Positions 21,708 through 50,861 of a stretch of 64,000 nt of DNA are shown one piece after another (the first letter of the stretch is position 1; the number at the start of each line of letters is the position of its first letter). The notes beneath the pieces are model-generated. The model saw only the letters and a list, made by a program, of their open reading frames with translations, ran no database searches and was not told where the DNA came from. This DNA is from Mobula hypostoma (taxonomy: Eukaryota), in contig NC_086117.1 of NCBI RefSeq assembly GCF_963921235.1, forward strand, positions 41,230,001 to 41,294,000. The letters run 5' to 3'. The translations under genes and the position numbers were made by a program.

Positions 21708-22174
21708 TTAAATGGAAGATACAATATTATTTCTTTCCCATTTCCAAACGTGCAAGACATGGTCATAGAAGGAACATGTTGCCAACAAATCACCCTTATT
21801 CTTTGTCCAGTCAATACCTGCCTTGTAATTCTGTTGCTCTGTAATGGCACAGTTCACATTTGGACTATGAGATGCACCTCCGGCCTGCAAACTGCCAGAA
21901 ACCTCAGTGCCATAATCATCCACCTCATCTTCCACCACCATATCAAATAAACCAGTGGGAGATTCATACTGAATCTTCAGGTGCCGGAATTTGATTTCTG
22001 CTTCCTTTGTTCCTTGCTTGCATTCCTTTTTCCTTTGAGTTTCAGATAAAGATGACGATACAGGGCAAGGCTTAGTGGTGGGTAGAGTATCAACAGATAG
22101 TCTTGACCAGTCTGCTCCATATGCCAATGAATTGTGCAATATATAGGAGTAAAGAATGGGGCATTTTTCTTGGC
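21708..22174 (-). CDS. DPH7: DPH7 coding exon 9 (last)
   Basis: Acceptor TTGCAG|GC; SLAYGADWS...LLATCSFYDHVLHVWKWE...stop. Confidence 0.96.
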
Positions 22175-28076: not shown

Positions 28077-28249
28077 CTTGTGCACCCTCACAGTCTAGGA
28101 TATGATATCCATTGTGCATGCACGCTGCAAGCAGCAAGTTTTCCTGACTTGGATGCCACTTAACTCTCCAGACACCTCCCTGGACATGGGTATCTGCCAA
28201 TGGCTGTTTCATCTGCCGGGAATCCCAAATGAGAACATGCTCATCATAA
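28077..28249 (-). CDS. DPH7: DPH7 coding exon 8
   Basis: TTCCAG|T...[33 protein letters not shown]...ACMHNG...G|GTGAGT. Confidence 0.97.
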
Positions 28250-30337: not shown

Positions 30338-30403
30338 CTTCCAGTAGCCAGTATGTGTTGTTTATGTGGATTGCTCTGGATACTACACACTCCCATTGAA
30401 TGC
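30338..30403 (-). CDS. DPH7: DPH7 coding exon 7
   Basis: TTTCAG|G HSMGVCSIQSNPHKQHILATG AG|GTAAGA. Confidence 0.96.
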
Positions 30404-31387: not shown

Positions 31388-31460
31388 CTAGTGCTGGTAA
31401 AGAGTGGTCTGTTGGTCCCCATCCGCATATCCCAAACCTTCAACTTACTGTCATCACCTC
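31388..31460 (-). CDS. DPH7: DPH7 coding exon 6
   Basis: TTGCAG|GA GDDSKLKVWDMRMGTNRPLFTST AG|GTGTGT. Confidence 0.95.
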
Positions 31461-32109
31461 CTGCAAAAGGAAAGAGAAACAAAAACAATAAACTAGCCCA
31501 TGATGTTCTTCACAACACAAACAAAATGCATTCCCAAAAATGCTTGCTTTTCTCTGTCCTTGGGCAGAGAATTTGATTCCCATCTTATTTGTTCAGATAC
31601 AAATGTCGCTCCAGGCTAGGATATGACTTTGATATTATGCTTTTCATAAATGCATTCTCAAAGGATGAAATTGCATGAAATATTTTGAGATTATAGCCTC
31701 TACACAGAAAAGTCATTAACACAGAAAAAGTGCTGCACTAGATCAGAAAACTAAAGTAACAAATCACTTATCTCTAGATTTTACACAAGCTGCATTAAGT
31801 TCAAAGGATTGTCAATGTTTAATATTTTGTCAGCAAAATTCCAATTACAACACTTGTGTTTTTCATATTATGCAAGATGCAATCTTTTACAGTAATTAAA
31901 AAATGCAGAAAAATCAAGCTTAGACTTAATGTTAAAAATTCAAAGATCAATTAACATTCAAGATCAAAGACACACAAGACATTAGATAGAATTTTTCATG
32001 CACAATTCAGCCAGCTGGTCAGTTAAAAAATCAAAACTGAGCACAGTTAGAATATCAATAGCATATTTTGAGAGTTGTAGGATTTACCACTGACTAGATT
32101 TTTTTTTAA

Positions 32110-32347
32110 AAAGTTACAGCATTGTAACAAACCCTTTTGGCCCAACAAGCCCATGCACCCAATTCACCTACTGTATATGACTAATTAATCAAATAACAAA
32201 CACATATCTTTGGAATGTGGGAGGAAGCCAGAGGAAATCCACATGGTCAAGGGGAAAACGTACAAACTCCTTACACATAACAGTGGAAATTGAACCCAGG
32301 TTGCTGTAGTAGCATTACACTAACCTTTATGTTACTGTGCCGCCCCA
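32110..32347 (-). mobile_element. HE1/V-SINE-like tRNA-derived SINE, degenerate
   Basis: Minus strand starts GGGCGGCACAGTAAC, has B-box-like GGTTCAATT and V-domain-like GTAAGGAGTTTGTACGTTTTCCCC. Confidence 0.7.
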
Positions 32348-32986
32348 AAATTTTAACAAGAAAGAATGTGTTAAATAACTTAAGTCAATTATTTTGTAAT
32401 ATAATCATCCTTGGCAATAACTCTGAGGCAGATGACCTTTTATGGTAAATTATCTCAAATTTTAATTTAGTAACTAATTGTCTAATATTGGAAAGCTCAC
32501 ATCCTACTTCAAGGTTAAATTTCCATCTCATCAATTACACCAAAATGTTGGAACAGTTTTCCTCTGACAGTTCAACAGATAAATACAGGGTACACAGTTC
32601 AGTGTCAGGCCTGTGTCCAGTTATTCAGCTTTAGTTGAACTGTTGGTACTTAAAATGGCCATGACTGGAATTGGAGGATGGGGTTGATAATGGTTATTTT
32701 GAGGTTCTTCTCCTTCCCGTTCATTTCAGAAATGTTCTTGCATCTAGAAATTCGATGGCATGAACTCTCTAGTTTAACACTTGAGGAATTAATGCTTTGA
32801 AGATATGCTAAAGGATGCAACAAAATTGTACACAACACTTTAATGAACTCTGCCTTCATAGGAGACAATTTAAAGTGTCAGAATGTTTGCTAGTGTGAAA
32901 GCAAAGCAACAGTTCATACACAGATAAAAAATAAGTTTTAAGCTGACTTCTTTCGCACAACTGCTCAGAACAGATGAACAGGCTAC

Positions 32987-33144
32987 CTGAGTAAACAACA
33001 TCTGTATTCCAGTAATTGAAAGCCGCAATCCAAGCCTCAAAGTCATGTGCCTTCCACTGAGAGACCACATCCAGTCTACAGCTATCCACAGACACCAGAC
33101 TCAAACAGCCCTTAGAGTCACTGCTAATAATCTTGACAGGTTCA
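32987..33144 (-). CDS. DPH7: DPH7 coding exon 5
   Basis: TTGCAG|[13 protein letters not shown]...[24 protein letters not shown]|GTAGCC. Confidence 0.97.
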
Positions 33145-34771
33145 CTGCAATGACAAAAGTTAAATATTATGATTAGCAGCACAACATTTCACATTTCAGA
33201 AACAATTTCTGATTTCTTTTATTATGCATTGTTCTTGTTTTACCTTATTCTAGCTCAATGCACTATGTAATGAACAGCATGAAAGACAAAGTTTTCACTA
33301 CCTTAATACATGACAGCCAATTCCAATTCAACTTCAAAAAGTAGATAAACTACAACTTTAAATGAGAACATTTGCAAGTTACTCAGAGTTTACACATTAA
33401 ATTGACAGAAATAATCAATAAATTACTCTTAAAATCTTCAAAAATTGATGACATTCAACATGCTAAATAAATGTGAGTGATGTCAATTGTGGAGGTAGAA
33501 TATTAATTACGTTTGTTATCCAATATCAAGAACAAAAATAGTTAGATACATGAAAGGTCAACCTATCTGAACAGTTTTTATACACTTTAGTATTGAATAG
33601 TTAATAATAGTTATACTTTTAAAAAATGTTTGAGTCTATATCCTGCATACTCAAGGGAGATTTGATCAATTGCCATGAAATAATAAATTGAGCAGATTGT
33701 GTTCACGCTGCCAAATTATTTCAGATCAATGACACGTCAATATAAGGTTACACAAGATTACATGCATCTTGTTTTAAAGGAAAATAATGGAATTATTGAG
33801 TATCATTGCTGGTTGCACATCATTCCTATCTAAAATTGAAAAGATAGAAGCCAATTCATATGATATAGTTATTGCAGTTCTACGAGATGGTTTTAATGGG
33901 CTTGCTGGGGTTGGCTTAAGGAGTAGTTATGATGGTAGGGAATTTTTCAGTGGAACGTCAAATACCAAATTGACATATACACTACATGGCAAAGACTTCA
34001 AGAGTGTTGATGCACCTGAGATGCAAGTTCATAAGAGTTGGATGTCACACTAAGGTGTGCAAAACATCATTCAATCTGCACGGAGTATTGTATACAGTTC
34101 TAACTGCTTCATTACTGGAAGGATGTGGAAGCATTACAAACAATGCAGAAGAGATATTGGGTAGATTGGGTTTTACCTCACTGTAGAGGCCAAGTGGTGG
34201 GCCCTATAGTGATTTATAAGATTGGATAGAGAGTCAGAGATTTTTTCCCAAGACTAAAACTAGAGGAGAGAGAGGGAACTTTAAAGGAGTGCCAAGGGGT
34301 GAGTTTTCCCCACACAACTGGTGATTATACAGAATCAGCTCCTGAGAAAGTGGTACAGGCAGGTACAATATTTAAAAGGTATTTTGACAGGTGAGTGGAT
34401 AGGAAAGCGAAGGATACAAGCCCTATGCAGGTAAATGGGATTAGCGTAGATGGACATCAGAAGGTAGTATGGGCAAGTTGAGCCAAGGGGCCCTTTACGG
34501 TGCTTTTCAACTCAAAGACTCAATTTTGTTTCAATAATTCGATATGCTCTTACTTTCATTTTGAAATTTTCCCGAAGATTATCCCTTAACCTCCTAGGTC
34601 CAGGACTTAATCATGAAGCAAAATAAAATACAATTTTATAGGCTTTTCATATCCCCAACATACAGGTTTGACAGAAATACAAATTACTTCATACACTAGT
34701 TCCAGGAGATAAGAATGCATAGGGTGAACATACATTTGAAAAAAAAAATTGGGGGAGAAATAAAAACTTAC

Positions 34772-34863
34772 TGTTGTCTTCCTGTTGACCAATCCAGGGA
34801 CAGAGCCAGACATTCTGGCCATAACTTAACACTACACACAGACTCCAACAGGCAGCTGTTTTT
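34772..34863 (-). CDS. DPH7: DPH7 coding exon 4
   Basis: CAGTAG|KNSCLLESVCSVKLWPECLALSLDWSTGRQ CA|GTAAGT; CLALSLDWSTG is conserved with human. Confidence 0.95.
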
Positions 34864-35469
34864 CTACTGAAAGAAAAGATTTCACTGAGCCACAAGCAAT
34901 TCCAAATTGATGTCTACATTTCCATGTGCCTTTGTCACCAATTTTCTTCCCATTTCTTTTTCACGTTAGTGCAAAGTTTCAAAAGTATTAGTATCAACAA
35001 AAAGGCTTGAAAATTTTGTCTACATTTTTCTAACTGCAAGGAGCTTTAGTGACATATCCATTTTTGTTCTCCCATCTAGTATAAACATACCAGCAGGCAT
35101 GGAAGATAAGAACTGAAAAGATGTATAGGACCAATTACCCCTCCCTAATCCATGTGGGTGTAGCTAAGTACATATTTATATGAAGCAGTGGGTGTAAAAT
35201 GGGAGCAACTTGCAGTGAAAGATGAAGCAAAAGCCTCTTTCAACTTTTTTTCCTGTAGCACACAAAAAGCAGCATTTGACATTTTATCATCTTACAAAAT
35301 ACAGTTTAACTTTATCCTTGGACTAAACAAAACTATAAACATATTAACTGAAAGACCAGCCACACAAAACTAAGATTGATCACTATGCAATTTGTAGTAC
35401 AATAACTCTACAAACCAAAACAATATGCCGCAATTCGCCTACTACTCTACACAACAGATACAATCTCAC

Positions 35470-36540
35470 TGGCTCTCCACTCTGCTTCGGGGTACTTAGA
35501 CAACCGCAAACACCATACATTTTGTTGTTATTTATTGATTACAGCTCAGGATTTAACACCATCATCCCCTCATTACTAATCACCACACTTCAAGATCCTC
35601 AACTTTTTTAAATCAAGAGACCAGTCAGTGTAGATTGTTAATAACATCTCCTCTTCACTGACATCAACACAGTTGCACCTAAATGATGTACACTTAGCCC
35701 ACTGCTCTACTTTCTCTCTACACTTCTAACTGCAGATGAACACAGCTCAATTGCAATCTGTAAATTTGCAGAGGACACCAGTATTATTAGTAGAATCTCA
35801 AACAGCAACAAGGAGTCATACAGGCATGAGATAGATCAACAGGTTGTGTGGTGAATTGATTGGACTTAAGGAAGGGGGAATTGGGAGAACGTACTCCAGT
35901 CCTCATTAGGGGTCGGCAGTGGAAAGGACAAAGCAGTTTTAAGTTCTTGGGCATTAACTTCATGGAGAATCTACCCTGCACTCAGCACATTGATGGAATC
36001 ATGAGGAAGGCATGCCAGAAGTTATACTTTGTCAGGAGTTTGATGAGATTCGGTGTGTCACCAAGGTCTGCTACAGATTTCTATAGATGTATGATGGAGA
36101 GTATTCTGTCTGGTTGCATCACAGCCTGGTATGGAAGCTTCAATGCACAGGATCACAAGAAGCCACAGGGTCAGAGACTTCACCAGCTCCATCACAGACA
36201 CAACCCTCTCTATTATCAAGGACATCTTCACAAGATAGTGCCTCAGGAAAACAGTATCCATCACCAAGGGCTCTCACAAATCAGGACATGCACTCTTCTC
36301 GTTACCACCATCGGAGAGGAGGTACAGGAACCTAAAGACCCATACTAAAGAGTTCTGAAACAGCTTCTTCCCCTCCACCAGATTTCTGAATAGTCTAGGA
36401 AAACATGAACACGACCTTGCTATTCCTTTCTTTATGCACTATCTAGATTTGTAGTTTATGGTAATTTTGTGTTTGCACTGTATTGCTGCTGCAAAACATT
36501 TTACATCATATAATCGGTGATAATAAATGTGATTTGAATA
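35470..36540 (+). mobile_element. Rex1/Babar-type LINE, degenerate 3' part
   Basis: ORF 35860-36348 (SFKFLGI...LYFVRSL...FYRCMMESILSGCITAWYG); tail with AATAAA. Confidence 0.8.
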
Positions 36541-36769
36541 TTCTCCTTCAAAACCAAGCAAAATTGTTTCTAAATAGTCACTATTAATAGCATTCAAAGA
36601 CTAAAAAAAAATGATTCTTCATGATGAACCAGAAACCAAAAGTATACCTTCAAACATAATAAATCTCAATTAATGCAAACATTGTTATCTGTGGTCACAC
36701 AAATAAAAATGTTTTGATGCCCCATAAAGAAAAGGCACAAAAGGCTTAGCAAGTACTGCAAACCTTAAA

Positions 36770-37975
36770 CTCAAGAGATTCTGCAGATGCTGGAACTACA
36801 AAGTAACACACACATACAATGCTGAAGGAACTCAGCAGGTCGTGCAGCATCTAGGGCAGGGATTCATAATCTTTTATTTGCCATGGATCAACACCTTTAA
36901 GCAAGAGGTCTGTGGACCCTAGGCTGGGAAACCCTGATCTAAGGGAAGGAAAAAAGAGTCAACATTTTGAGCTAAGACCCTTCATGACTAGAAAGGAAGG
37001 GGAAAAAAGCCAGAATAAGGTAGTGGGAGAGGAGTACAAGCTGGAAGGCAATAAGTGAAGTCAGGTGAAGGGGAAGTTAGGTCAGTGGGGAAGGAGGAAT
37101 CACGTAAGAAGCTGAGAGATGGCAGTTGGAAAAGGTAAAGGGCTTGAAGAAGGAGCAATCCAATGAGAGGAGAGTGTTCCATGGGAGAAAGGGAAGGAGA
37201 CCAGAAGGAAGGAATAGGCAGGTGAAGAGTAGAAGGGGCAAGAAGGGAGCCAGAATGGGGAATGGGAAAAAGGGGGGGGGGGGAGGAGAGAGAAATCAGA
37301 GGAAGTTAGAGAAATCGATGGTCATGCCAACAGGTTGGAGACTACCCAGATGGAATAAAGTATTGCTCCAAAACCTGAGAATTACCTCATCATACCAGCA
37401 GAGTAGGCCATGGACTGATATGGGAGAATGGGAATCAGGATTCGAATTAAAATGGTTGGCCACTAGGAAATTCTGCTTGTTGCATATGGAGCAAAGAGGG
37501 CTCAACAAAGTGGTCCCCCTATATAGGTTGGCTCTCACCGATGTACAGGAGGCCACACCAGGAGTGCAGAATATAGTGGGTGACCCCAACAGACTTGAAG
37601 GTGAAATGTCGCCTCACTTGGAAGAATTGTTTTGGGGCCCCAAATGGTGATGAGGAAGGAGGTGAATGAGCAGGTATAGCACTTCCTCTGCTTCAGGAAT
37701 AAGAGGCAATAGGGAGGGAAGAATGGACAAGGGAATCACAGAGGGAACAGTTCCTGCAGAAAGAGGAGAGGGGAGGAGGCAAAGGTGTGCTCAGTGGTAG
37801 GATAGCATTGAAGATGGCAGAAGTTGCAGCAAATGATGTTCTAGGTGTGGAGGCTCATGGGTGGTAGGTAGGGAGAAGAGGAACACTATTCCTGTAAGGC
37901 GGCGGGAAAATAGGGTGAGGGCAGATGTCTAGGGAATGGAGGAGATGAGGGTGAGGGCAATATCAATGGTTGAGC
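36770..37975 (-). mobile_element. Penelope-like element 3' part
   Basis: Minus ORF 37296-37589 VANHFNS...HGLL...FHLGSLQPVGMTIDFSNF (GIY-YIG C-terminus) plus the terminal repeat. Confidence 0.85.
36857..36936. mobile_element. 80-bp hAT (Charlie-like) MITE nested in the Penelope terminus
   Basis: TIRs CAGGGATTCATAATCT / reverse complement CAGGGTTTCCCAGCCT. 8-bp TSD ATCTAGGG / ATCTAAGG. Confidence 0.8.
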
Positions 37976-39263
37976 AACTACTGCAAAATGTGTATATGCT
38001 CACATGAAGCAAGGACAAAAATTCTGCCTTGCTATAAATGAAGGATATCCAATACCTAGCCTCAAATGAAAAATGATCAGTCACAGACAGTAACAGCATG
38101 ACACAGCCCCTTCAGCCCAGTGTCCATGCTGACCATTAATCTCCCAATTTACACTAGTCTTACATTAATCCCAATTTTTTTTCTCATCACATTCTCCTAC
38201 TCACCTACACACTGGGGTAATTTACAATAGCCAGCTAACTTAGCAATCCACACATCTTTGAGATGCAGCAGGAAATCATTCAGTGGGCTGCAATCATCGC
38301 GAGAAGAAATTTGTTGGTGCGGCAGGGTACGGTTTAAAAAGAACTCAGAGCCTTTCCATGGGCTGTAATCATAACGATCACTTAGGTACTCGGCAGGGAC
38401 CAATAAAAAGAAGCAAGGTGTGTGTGACCACTGTTGGAGTGGACAGTGTTAAGTGGCCACGCTTTGGCTCAATAGGCTTAGGCAAGAACTCAAGCCTGAG
38501 AAGTTAGGCAGGATGGTAGTTAAGGCTGTGGAGTGCTCGTCTTGTAAGATGTAGTGATGTAGTATTGCAGGGTACTGACTTATCTTCCTGATGACTACAT
38601 CTGCAGGAAGTGCACCCAACTTCAGCTCCTGACTGACAAGGGAAAGGAACTGGAGCTGGAGCCTGATGTATTCAGGACCATCTGGAGGCTGAAAGCCTCA
38701 TAGGTAAGACTTTTGCTGAGTTGATCATACCCAGAGTTCAGGTTTTAGATAGTAGGTGTGACTATCAAAAGTAGTAAGGGGAGTAAGCAATCAGCACAGG
38801 GTTCTCCTGTGGCCATTCTCCTCAGCAACAAGCATATCCTTTGGATACTGCTGGGCCAGAGGGGGGGCTGGTGGGAGAGCTAGGGGGAGATGACCTATCA
38901 GGGCAGAGCAGCAACAAACAGGCCAGTGGCACTGTGGCCATCTCTGAGGCTCAGGACAGAAGGGTAAAGTCAGGCACAGCGATTATGATAGAAGACTATA
39001 GCTATGATGGCTATGGGGATGAACAGATGCTAGGGTCCAGGATGTCTCAGAGTGGCAGCAGAAGATTTTGAAAAGGGAGGGTGAACAGCCAGAGGTCGTG
39101 GTGCACATTGGCACCAATGACATATGTAGAAAGGGAGAAGAGGCCTGAGCAAGGAATATAGGAAGTTGGAAGAGGCTGAAGAGTAGGACCTCCGAGGTAG
39201 TAATTTCTGGATTACTCTCAGTTTAGTGTACTAGCCAGGAAAGGAATAGGATGATAGTACAGA

Positions 39264-40414
39264 CCAGCACAGACAAAATGCTGGAAGAAATCAGCAGGTC
39301 AGGCAATATCAATGGAAGTGAATAAACTCAACGTTTTTGGGCGAGACCCTTCTCCAGGACTAGAAAGGAAAGGGGAAGACACCAGAATAAAAAGGTGGGG
39401 AGAGGGAACAGAGAATAACTAGAAGGTGATAGGTGAAGCCAAGTGGGTATGAAAGATAAGGGCTAGAGACAAAGGAATCTGATAGGACAGGAGAGTGGAT
39501 CATAGGAGAAAGGGAAGGGGGGGGACTCGGGGGAGGTGATAGGCAGGTGAGAAGAGGCAAGAAGTCACAATGGAGAATAGAAGAGGGGAGGGGGAGAAAA
39601 AAAATCAATATTCATGCCATCAAGTTGGAGGCTAGCCAGACGGGATACAAAGTGTTGCACCTCTACTCTGAGGATGGCCTCATCCTAACACAGGAGGAAG
39701 CTATGAACTAACATGTCAGAATGAGAATGGGAATTGGAATTAAAATATTTGGCCACCGGGAAGTTCCGCTTTTGACGTATCGAGCGGAGATACTCGACAA
39801 ATTTGCGACTTGTCTCACCAATGCACAGGAGGCCACCTCAAGAGCAGCAGACACAACAGATGACCACAGCAGATTCGCAGGTGAAGTGTTGCCCCACCTG
39901 AAAGGACTGTTTGGGGCCCTGAAAGGAGGTGAGAGAGAAGATGAATGGGCAGGTGTAGCACATTGGCTGCTTGCAGGGATAAATACCAGGAGCGAGATTA
40001 GCAGAGAGATATGAATGGACAAGGGAGTCACAGAGGGAGTAATCCCTGAAGAAAGCGGAGACAGAGATGAGGAAAAAATGTGTCTGGTGGTAGGTTCCCT
40101 TTGAAGATGATAGAAGTTGCAGGGATGATATGTTGGATGCAGAGGCTCATGGAGTAGTAAGGACAAGAGGAACTATCACTTTTAAGACGGTGGGAAAGTG
40201 GGGTGAGCACAGATATTCAGGAAATGGAGGAGAGGTGGGTAAGGGCAGCATCAATGGTGGAAGAAAGGAAACCCCACTCTTTAGAGGAGGACGACACTTC
40301 TGACATCCCGGAAAGGAAAGCCACATCCTGGGAAAAGATGAGGCAGAGATGAAGGAACTGAGAAAAAGGAGGAGCATTTTTACAGGCGACATGGTAGGAA
40401 GAGGTATAGTCAAG
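39264..40414 (-). mobile_element. Penelope-like element nested in CR1 ORF1
   Basis: 9-bp TSD TAGTACAGA at 39255-39263 and 40415-40423. Removing the insert restores the CR1 ORF1 reading RNRMIVQMDEWLRKWC. Confidence 0.88.
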
Positions 40415-41047
40415 TAGTACAGATGGATGAGTGGCTGAGGAAGTGGTGCAGGGGATAGGGTTTCAGATTTCTGGATCATTGGGATCTCTTCTTATATCTT
40501 CTGCAGGACGGTTTATACCTGAACCCAAGGGAGACCAATATATTTGTGGATGGATTGCTAGAGCTGCTGGGGAGGGTTTAATCCAATTTGGCAGAGAGAT
40601 GGAACTGGAGTGATAGGGCTGAGGAGGGGGCAGTAGGTATACAAGTTGATGCATTGTGCAGTGAGACAGAGAGGACAGGCAGATGATAGGGCAAAATTGC
40701 AAAATTGGGATGAGTTGAAGTATAACATGAGGGCAAAATCGAAAAAATTGATGAATTCACGACTGAAGGTGCTATATTTGAATGCTTGTGGGATACGGAA
40801 TAAGGTAGATGAACTTGTAACAGTTAGAGATTGTCAAGTAAGATGTTGTGCACATCACAAAGTCATAGCTGAAAGAAGATCATAGTTGAGAGCTTAACAT
40901 CCAAGGACACGTATTGCATCGAAAGGACAAATATTAAATCAAATCGTTAGAAAGAAGTGATGTAGGATCAAAAGATGTAGAATCTTTGTGGGTAGAGTTA
41001 AGAAACTGCAAGGGTAAAAACACCCTGATAGGAGTTATATACAAGCC

Positions 41048-41560
41048 TCCATCGAGTCAACTTTGTTCATCTCCTCTCTCTTATCTCTGTAATTCCCTTT
41101 ACTCCATTGTAATACTGAAACATTTGACCTTTATTTTCTCCCCCTCAAACAGTAGCAAGGAAATGGAATATAAATTACAATAGGAGATTAAATAGTAATA
41201 TAAAAAGGGTAAAGTTACAACAGTTATGTGTGAATTTCTATATGTACATAGATTGGAAAAATCAAATTTGTGCTAGATCCCAAGAGAGATTTTGTAGAAT
41301 GCCTACAACATGGTATTTTAGAGCAGTTTGTGGTTGAGCCCACTACGGGAAAGGCAATTCTGGATCGAGTGTTCTATAATGAACCAAATTGGATTAGGGA
41401 ACTTAAGGTAAAGGAACCCTTGAGAGGAAGTAATCATATTATAGAATTCACCCTGCCATTTGAGGGGGAGAAAATAAAGGTCAAATGTTTCAGTATTACA
41501 ATGGAGTAAAGGGAATTACAGAGATAAGAGAGAGGAGATGAACAAAGTTGACTCGATGGA
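41048..41560. repeat. Perfect 102-bp inverted repeat (41048-41149 vs 41459-41560)
   Basis: Base-by-base comparison by eye shows no mismatch; 309-bp spacer. Confidence 0.95.
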
Positions 41561-43340
41561 AACACTTGCAGGGGTAACATCAGAACAAGAAAAGGTGCCC
41601 AAATTTGCCCTTTTTCTTACAATTTGGAAGGTGCAGGATAGAAGCATTCCAAAAATGAAGAAGTATTCTAAAGGAAGAATAAGTCAATCATGGCTGACAA
41701 AGAAAATCAAAGGAAGCATTAAAGGAAAAGAGAGGGCATAAAATATTGCAAAAATTAGTGGGAAGTTAAGAGCATTGGAAGCTTTTAAAAAACAAAGAAG
41801 GCAACTAAAAAAGCCATAAGGAGAGAAAAAATGAAATATGAAGGTAAGCTAACCAATAATATAAAAGAGGAAACCAAAAGTTTCATATTTTTATAAAATA
41901 AATAAAAAGAGGTGAAAGTGGATATTAAACTGCTGGAAAATGCCACCAGAGAGGTGATAATGGAGGTTCAGAGAAATTGCAGACTGACTAAACAAGTATT
42001 TTGCATCAGTCTTCGCTGTGGAAGACATTAACAGTCTGCCAGAAATTCAAGTGTGTCAGGGGTGAAAAGTGAGTGTAGCTGCTATAAGTAAGAAGTCACT
42101 TCAGAAGCTGAAAGGTCTAAAGGTAGGTAAGTAACCTGGAGCAGGTGAACTATACCCCAGGGTTCTGAGAGAGGTAGCTGAGGAAATCTTGAAGGCATCA
42201 GTAATGAGCTTTCAAGAATCACTAGATTCTGGAATGGTTTTGGAGTACTGGAGAATTCAGTCCACTCTTTAAGGAAGGGAGGCAGAAGAAAGGAAATTAT
42301 AGGCCAGTTAGCCTGCTTCAGTGATTGGGAAGTTGTTGCCATCCATTATTAAAGATGAGGTTTCGGAGTACTTGGAGGCACAAAATAGGCCAAAGTCAGC
42401 ATAATTTCCTTAAAAGAAATGCCTGGAATTCTTTGATAAATAACAAGCAGGATAGACAAAGGAGTCAGTGGATGTTGTTTATTTGGATTTTCAGAAGGCC
42501 TTTGACAAGGTGCTGCACAAGAGGCTGCTTAAGATGATCAGAGTCCATGGTAGTACAGGAAAGATACTAGCATGGATAGAAGATTGGCCGACCGGCAGGA
42601 GGCAAAGAGTAGGAGTAAAGGGTTCCTATTCTGGTTGCCTGCCGATGACTAGTGGCATTCCGCAGGGGTCAGTATTGGGACTGTTTCTTTTTACATTATA
42701 TGTCAATGATTTAGATGATTGATTTGATGGCTTTGTAGCCAAGTCTGTGGTTGATGCAGGGGCTGGTAGTGGGAGCAAAAGGTATTGGGACCACTTCCTT
42801 TCACATTATACAGTATGTCAATGATTTGGATGACAGAATTGATGACTTTCTGGCCAAGTTTGCAGGCGATACAAAGATAGGTGGAGGGACAATTCTAGAG
42901 ATTGCCATGAAGGAAAACATCAGCTCCAAACCTACCCCTTAAGAATGCTGTATGTTTTCAATTAGATTACCTCTCATTCTTCTAACACCACAGATTATAG
43001 ATGCAATATGCTTCTCTTCCCTCCTCCAACAGATCCATCACCACAAGCATCCCAGTCTCACCAGTAATTAACACCAGTATGGCAACCCCAATCCCAGGTA
43101 TTCTAACCTTGAGAAATACAGTAACATTAAATGGAATCTTACAGAAGTCTGAAAACCTCAATATAGCACATCAACCAATTTATCCTTATCCATTGTTAGC
43201 TACAATGTCAACCAAAAGTTGCGAAATCTATAAAACAAGGCTACATTTGATAATTCCCGGTTAATATTTTTCAAATTCCCAGTTACCAGTTCCATGACGA
43301 TTTCAATGTTTTCCCCACCACAGAAAAAAAATACGCATAC

Positions 43341-43428
43341 CTCACATGGTGTTAGGTTACACAGCTCCAGACTTCCTTCAGCATTCACTATTCCAAGTAC
43401 AGGGTACCCAGCTATTGGCACATGGCAC
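43341..43428 (-). CDS. DPH7: DPH7 coding exon 3
   Basis: TTGTAG|G CHVPIAGYPVLGIVNAEGSLELCNLTPCE|GTATGC. Confidence 0.95.
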
Positions 43429-50116: not shown

Positions 50117-50256
50117 CATTTGAGATCTAATATTGCAGGCATTTCAATCCTTTGTACCTCCGTTAATGGAGAATAAAGCTGTTTCTGTTGAAAGCAGTAT
50201 AGGTAAAGGCGCCCCTGCCGGAGCTGGGGCTCATTAATTTCTGAGTCTCCTGAACC
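50117..50256 (-). CDS. DPH7: DPH7 coding exon 2 (missed by the ORF track)
   Basis: TTTCAG|[48 protein letters not shown]|GTAAGC. Confidence 0.96.
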
Positions 50257-50720: not shown

Positions 50721-50861
50721 CTTCTCCTCAGGATTCTTTAATTGATAAGTACCACAGGTTAGTACATTATGAAACTTGTCAATAGGGCACCACTCCACAG
50801 CATCTGCACTGTACTCTGTGTCCACCACCTGCAGGGTTCGAGATGTACATCGAGTGTCCAT
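50721..50861 (-). CDS. DPH7: DPH7 coding exon 1 (exon including 5'UTR starts at 50915)
   Basis: MDTRCTSRTLQVVDTEYSADAVEWCP...LTCGTYQLKNPEEK|GTACAG. Upstream acceptor TTTTTCAG| at 50916/50915. Confidence 0.96.

Follow-up and report, generated by a model that had tools for sequence, protein, structure and literature searches.

The 3' end of intron 3 of DPH7 in Mobula hypostoma carries two candidate acceptors three nucleotides apart, CAG followed directly by TAG, and raises the question of which of them is used and whether the stop codon exposed by the upstream one serves as a regulatory switch or is a tolerated leak. DPH7 (WDR85) is the diphthine methylesterase of diphthamide synthesis. The original prediction described this acceptor as a switch that could titrate diphthamide synthesis, an idea that we regard as speculation. 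Here, we examined the gene and its intron 3 acceptor in a 64,000-nucleotide stretch of M. hypostoma DNA (the window), together with transcript contigs and the orthologous acceptors of other cartilaginous fishes.

DPH7 gene model and the tandem acceptor of intron 3

A nine-exon DPH7 model was assembled by combining tblastn matches to DPH7 homologues with splice sites identified in the sequence. The exons, all on the minus strand, are as follows:

50721..50861, minus strand: exon 1, 141 nt, 47 codons, start codon ATG at 50861-50859, ending in phase 0
50117..50256, minus strand: exon 2, 140 nt
43341..43428, minus strand: exon 3, 88 nt, last codon GAG (codon 123), ending in phase 0
34772..34863, minus strand: exon 4, 92 nt, translated as KNSCLLES...LALSLDWSTGRQ, joint 33144/34772 present in an RNA contig
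32987..33144, minus strand: exon 5, from the homology model and the RNA contig
31388..31460, minus strand: exon 6, from the homology model and the RNA contig
30338..30403, minus strand: exon 7, from the homology model and the RNA contig
28077..28249, minus strand: exon 8, from the homology model
21708..22174, minus strand: coding part of exon 9, stop codon at 21710-21708

Translated with the distal acceptor, the model yielded 465 aa with no internal stop and matched, residue for residue, the NCBI DPH7 protein of M. hypostoma (XP_062929875.1; P0228), which is named in the sources as diphthine methyltransferase or methylated diphthine methylhydrolase. The protein differs from M. birostris DPH7 at 4 residues, shows 77-99% identity to the DPH7 of eight chondrichthyans in pairwise alignments (full-length orthology), and equals its homologues in length across the exon 3/4 junction. 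Because the model is identical to the NCBI protein, the junction coordinates of the original prediction are right (43341 to 34863 for the productive form, 43341 to 34866 for the poisoned form), and so is the intron end that it gave, TAG/AAA AAC behind a phase-0 GAG, which we read off the same sequence.

Exon 3 terminates in ...CCATGTGAG at 43341, followed by gtatgc with the GT donor at 43340-43339. The intron, 8.5 kb long, ends in ...tcttttctttCAG TAG, and the first base of exon 4 is 34863; the minus strand from 34875 to 34861 reads ttctttCAGTAGaaa. The elements of this acceptor region are as follows:

34864..34866, minus strand: distal acceptor TAG, the productive site; in-frame stop at codon 124 on proximal use; CAG in skates
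34867..34869, minus strand: proximal acceptor CAG, the same in 5/5 species; its use retains TAG in the mRNA
34870..34879, minus strand: short polypyrimidine tract tcttttcttt, 10-11 nt, with a pyrimidine (T) at -4 of the proximal site
34886..34889, minus strand: putative branch site ctcA, with the A at 34886, predicted from the sequence

Counted from the A of the putative branch site, the G of the proximal AG is 19 nt away and that of the distal AG 22 nt away, and the spacing from ctcA to the acceptor is kept in ray, skate, sawfish and whale shark. Sawfish, skate and whale shark read ctcAAt at this point, but Mobula reads ctcAGt (34885-34886); the change gives Mobula an extra AG on the putative branch site, 19 nt ahead of the proximal acceptor.

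The hexamer CAGTAG (34869-34864) stands directly before the authentic exon 4 boundary, which was fixed by the gene model, the NCBI protein and an RNA contig, and the acceptor is thus a NAGNAG site. Both variable bases (C and T) fit the 'plausible' HAGHAG motif, and CAGTAG has been classed as a 'plausible' two-site motif (PMC2951375). It is the sole NAGNAG among the Mobula DPH7 acceptors; the exon 6 acceptor reads CAG/GAG (31458-31463), the common NAGGAG type that is regarded as single-site.

Exons 1-3 comprise 369 coding nucleotides (141+140+88), that is 123 codons, and intron 3 therefore lies in phase 0. At the mRNA level, the exon 3/4 junction is GAG/AAAAAC for the distal site and GAG/TAGAAAAAC for the proximal site. 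Use of the proximal CAG makes TAG codon 124. Five exon junctions follow downstream, and 562 coding nt separate this stop from the last of them, exon 8/9; the usual rule for nonsense-mediated decay (NMD) therefore applies. The frame analysis accordingly bore out the original prediction in three respects: the distal TAG alone leaves the frame open (465 aa), proximal use stops translation after residue 123, and the five downstream junctions make such an mRNA eligible for NMD.

Introns 4 and 5 additionally contain very high-copy interspersed repeats (32071-32392, 33198-33358 and 34003-34163), whose summed contig depth reached about 63,000 in the DNA run of a relative and exceeded 1,000 in RNA runs.

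Acceptor use in Mobula transcripts

The transcript data consisted of assembled contigs of public runs, compared with stretches of at most 6 kb of the window; as intron 3 is longer than this, the exon 3/4 junction was read from the end of the matching piece and not from a joint. One RNA-type run of the source species (X1) contained a 2627-nt contig spliced over exons 4, 5, 6 and 7, whose exon 4 piece ended at 34865 with 166 further contig letters upstream. The last two letters of exon 3 (GAG) and of the intron (TAG) are the same, so a distal junction fits the genome for two bases beyond the exon start, to 34865, whereas a proximal junction would extend the match to 34868. The X1 mRNA therefore uses the distal site, which is also the one taken in the NCBI model.

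A second sample of the same species (run X36) gave a contig covering 34772-35066 with 0 differences, unspliced from exon 4 to 35066. In this RNA contig the unspliced 3' end of intron 3 (34864-35066) is joined to correctly spliced exons 4-7, which suggests that the 8.5-kb intron is removed late or retained in part. In run X18, from a more distant relative, a contig broke exactly at 34865 beside a separate unspliced contig, and pre-mRNA is enough to explain this break. The DNA run of a relative (X37) gave no contig over 34808-35100, a gap that carries no weight either way. Among the assembled contigs listed, no proximal junction was found for Mobula or for any other species with CAGTAG; as assembled contigs drop rare variants, a minor proximal form in Mobula is compatible with those listed.

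Apart from the choice between the two acceptors, annotated short isoforms lacking exactly exons 3 and 4 exist in M. birostris (405 aa), Narcine (408 aa) and Carcharodon (415 aa) (P0229, P0231 and P0233). This skip removes 180 nt in frame and changes W94 to C at the new junction. The first three bases of Mobula exon 5 (33142-33144, minus strand) are TGA, while Rhincodon has TAA and Narcine has TGG. Skipping of Mobula exon 4 alone would join GAG to TGA and likewise stop translation after residue 123, so a 123-aa reading frame is by itself no proof of proximal use. We therefore rejected the 123-aa N-terminal reading frame as a sign of the poisoned form, given that exon 4 skipping leads to TGA and retention of the intron leads to the same TAG.

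Conservation across sharks and rays and the skate orthologue

Chondrichthyan DPH7 proteins were reached with a profile made from a lamprey protein and the exon translations of the window. A protein search with a teleost DPH7 query returned only teleosts among the matches listed, and in tests, lamprey, hagfish or Lingula queries alone ranked sharks no higher than teleosts. The acceptor was compared in five species, one shark and four rays, with a skate among the latter. The ends of intron 3 are as follows:

Mobula: ctcagtgaaatcttttctttCAGTAG
Pristis (sawfish): ctcaatgaaatcttttctttCAGTAG
Narcine (electric ray): ttaattattttctttCAGTAG
Rhincodon (whale shark): ctcaatataatattttctttCAGTAG
Amblyraja (skate): ctcaatgaaatcttttctttCAGCAG

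The results showed CAGTAG in phase 0 in Mobula, Pristis, Narcine and Rhincodon, with exon 3 ending in TGTGAG in all four, so that the stop-inserting layout is common to one shark and three ray orders. The concern that CAGTAG might be absent in relatives, raised with the original prediction, is thereby excluded for sawfish, electric ray and whale shark. Fifteen of the last 20 intron columns were invariant among the five species, the whole proximal CAG included. For the other DPH7 acceptors of the same species, six had 6-11 invariant columns of 20 and that of exon 9 had 14 (four species). The intron 3 acceptor is thus the best conserved of the DPH7 acceptors compared, and ungapped identities agree; fair conservation is likewise seen at the acceptors of exons 3, 8 and 9. 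Between ray and shark, it is the flanks of exons 3 and 4 that can still be aligned, and, as a side observation, the acceptor flanks of these two exons (window positions 34772-43428) are the best conserved between the two groups.

In terms of the expectation that the alternative site of a splicing event coupled to NMD is conserved, the proximal CAG is present in 5/5 species and the TAG in 4/5. Parsimony, with a single shark, suggests that TAG is ancestral for elasmobranchs and that a T-to-C change occurred on the skate branch. Stop-inserting sites of this class exist in humans too (PMC2279118), and CAGTAG in a single genome is therefore not beyond chance. Judged by sequence comparison, it is the conservation across species, and not the presence in one genome, that exceeds chance.

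Amblyraja has CAGCAG at the orthologous site, behind the same 20-nt tract and with the same exon 4 start. Two isoforms are annotated in each of Amblyraja radiata and Leucoraja erinacea, X1 with 470 aa and X2 with 469 aa, and the additional residue of X1 is a single Q placed precisely at the exon 3/4 junction (...NK-Q-KNSC...), as splicing at the proximal CAG of CAGCAG would give. The proximal CAG therefore works in a nearly identical intron context. The pyrimidine tract and the proximal CAG are identical in skate and Mobula; the difference lies in the second triplet, which in the skate is CAG, so that proximal use adds a glutamine and no stop, and both forms are productive and annotated. In the Logan transcript assemblies, the listed members of the skate cluster were 469 aa long, except for one 77-aa fragment, and the exact X2 sequence (without Q, distal) had a Logan source while X1 was without one, which suggests that the distal site is the major one in skates too. 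By analogy, species with CAGTAG probably make some proximal product that is hidden by NMD and by annotation pipelines.

The donor of intron 3 in Amblyraja is GC (AAG/gcatgt; L001:4342-4343), compared to GT in Mobula, Pristis, Narcine and Rhincodon; the skate lineage with the TAG-to-CAG acceptor change thus also has a GC-AG intron 3 (Amblyraja).

Explanations of the stop-inserting acceptor

We consider it probable that intron 3 ends in a tandem acceptor whose distal site is the major one, with a minor leak cleared by NMD. This explanation starts from the observed anatomy, reading frame and conservation, from one contig with the distal junction and from the skate isoforms, and it adds a predicted branch-site position, predicted proximal use in Mobula and predicted NMD. 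The distal TAG would be the productive and dominant 3' splice site of intron 3, and the proximal CAG, 3 nt upstream, would be a competent but probably minor one. Its use would place UAG at codon 124, giving a 123-residue stub and an mRNA marked for NMD by the exon-junction rule. The stop-inserting form would then be a constitutive low-level leak, tolerated because NMD removes the transcript, and the change of TAG to CAG in skates would have turned the site into a harmless +Q/-Q tandem acceptor.

The arguments on site strength follow published rules. In general, preference goes to the proximal NAG and to a C at -3, while the distal NAG gains from a nearby branch site, from a short pyrimidine tract and from a pyrimidine at -4 (PMC3250501). 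The close putative branch site (19/22 nt), the short pyrimidine tract and the pyrimidine at -4 are the reasons why the distal site probably wins in DPH7, and if the predicted ctcA is the branch site, the distal AG lies at the better distance. Since the general rule favours the proximal position and its C at -3, the case for distal dominance is built on a single contig, on the NCBI model and on the analogy with skates. That the proximal CAG is so strongly conserved could point to a function that a tolerated leak leaves unexplained.

It is unlikely, though well worth weighing, that splicing never selects the proximal CAG, for instance on account of its lying too near the branch point, and that the hexamer is merely part of a constrained tract and acceptor. 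The putative branch site is indeed close, but the predicted distance of 19 nt to the AG is outside the usual exclusion range. The Mobula contig and every annotated protein from species with CAGTAG show the distal junction only, and distal-major YAGYAG sites exist (PMC3250501). However, in skates, where the 20 nt upstream are the same, one annotated isoform results from use of the proximal CAG, both sites of a CAGTAG were used in the human allele CFTR E831X (PMC2951375), and a minor form removed by NMD would be missing from assemblies and annotation.

A leak tolerated through NMD must also be weighed against regulated unproductive splicing, in which the choice of site is under the control of tissue, stress, or a feedback signal (translation or diphthamide status), DPH7 output is adjusted through NMD, and CAGTAG has been selected since the ancestor of sharks and rays; we judge this improbable. 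The proximal CAG is invariant in the most conserved DPH7 acceptor over five species. Selection is expected to act against tandem sites that insert a stop (PMC2279118), which makes long retention unexpected, many NAGNAG sites are conserved and regulated by tissue (PMC3250501), and the annotated skipping of exons 3 and 4 suggests a regulated region. Nevertheless, the contigs listed include no proximal transcript, and skates, which have CAGCAG and no stop, keep an otherwise normal DPH7, so that the poison feature is dispensable at least there. Moreover, the conservation could stem from constraint acting on a weak 3' splice site or on the skipping of exons 3 and 4, combined with the slow sequence evolution of cartilaginous fishes, and the acceptors of exons 3, 8 and 9 are fairly conserved as well. 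In its most specific form, this proposal would have a selected 3-nt rheostat send DPH7 mRNA to NMD and tune the last diphthamide steps on eEF2, with skates secondarily disarmed by the T-to-C change, and it is to be seen as a long shot.

An artefact is very improbable, be it a mistake in the assembly, an allele private to one individual or an incorrect gene model that misses an exon or has another phase, as the RNA contig of an independent sample has 0 differences over the acceptor region, three other species have the same hexamer, and the model equals the NCBI protein and matches its homologues in length across the junction; we found no support for it. The contig with 0 differences and the three other species also exclude the assembly error that had been named alongside the original prediction as a way in which CAGTAG could prove false.

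The nearest known case is CFTR E831X (2623G>T), described by Hinzpeter et al. (2010), in which both CAGTAG sites were used in patient cells, with 16% stop form and 8% distal form plus exon skipping (PMC2951375). As in DPH7, a CAG-then-TAG hexamer ends a phase-0 intron, and proximal use gives an in-frame UAG and NMD, the latter as a prediction in DPH7; in CFTR, the distal site removes the stop and yields a functional protein one residue shorter than wild type. However, CFTR E831X is a human disease allele derived from a mutated exonic GAG, and its normal site is the proximal one, whereas the DPH7 layout is the wild type, has the distal site as its normal site and is conserved over sharks and rays. 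A phase-0 CAGTAG acceptor has served as a standard example of a stop-inserting tandem site that yields an NMD target (Hiller et al. 2008, PMC2279118), and the creation of premature stops by tandem sites is noted in TassDB (PMC1669710). One survey set aside 35 stop-inserting human introns without studying them (PMC2279118), made no claim of deep conservation or function for them, and does not mention DPH7. The poison exons of SR protein genes (Lareau 2007, Ni 2007), as far as they are described where cited in PMC2279118, resemble DPH7 in that a splice choice leads to a premature stop and decay and the splice-site sequence is conserved, but they are cassette exons with demonstrated autoregulation and ultraconserved flanks, whereas the DPH7 event is a predicted 3-nt shift.

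The human stop-inserting sites and the TassDB remark mean that the kind is already known. What is new is a wild-type, deeply conserved stop-inserting NAGNAG in DPH7, together with a sister lineage in which a single base has converted it to a +Q/-Q site; our literature searches found no paper on DPH7 tandem splicing. Stop-inserting tandem acceptors are usually treated as rare noise or disease alleles and omitted from surveys, and here one is the wild-type state of a housekeeping gene for a translation modification, which sharks and three ray orders have retained along with the upstream AG. Skates, with CAG in place of TAG, provide a natural control in which proximal use can be read without being hidden by NMD. 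The locus thereby opens a general question to existing RNA-seq data, namely whether conserved stop-inserting NAGNAG sites are tolerated leaks or regulatory devices. If the DPH7 site is merely a leak, it still documents how strongly the context of a 3' splice site can be frozen, and it confirms the annotation.

Elsewhere in the gene, a difference of two residues (AT) separates the isoforms X1 and X2 of the shark Mustelus asterias (P0349 and P0234) where they align with the exon 8/9 junction of the window, which suggests a 6-nt tandem splice site at that position in this species.
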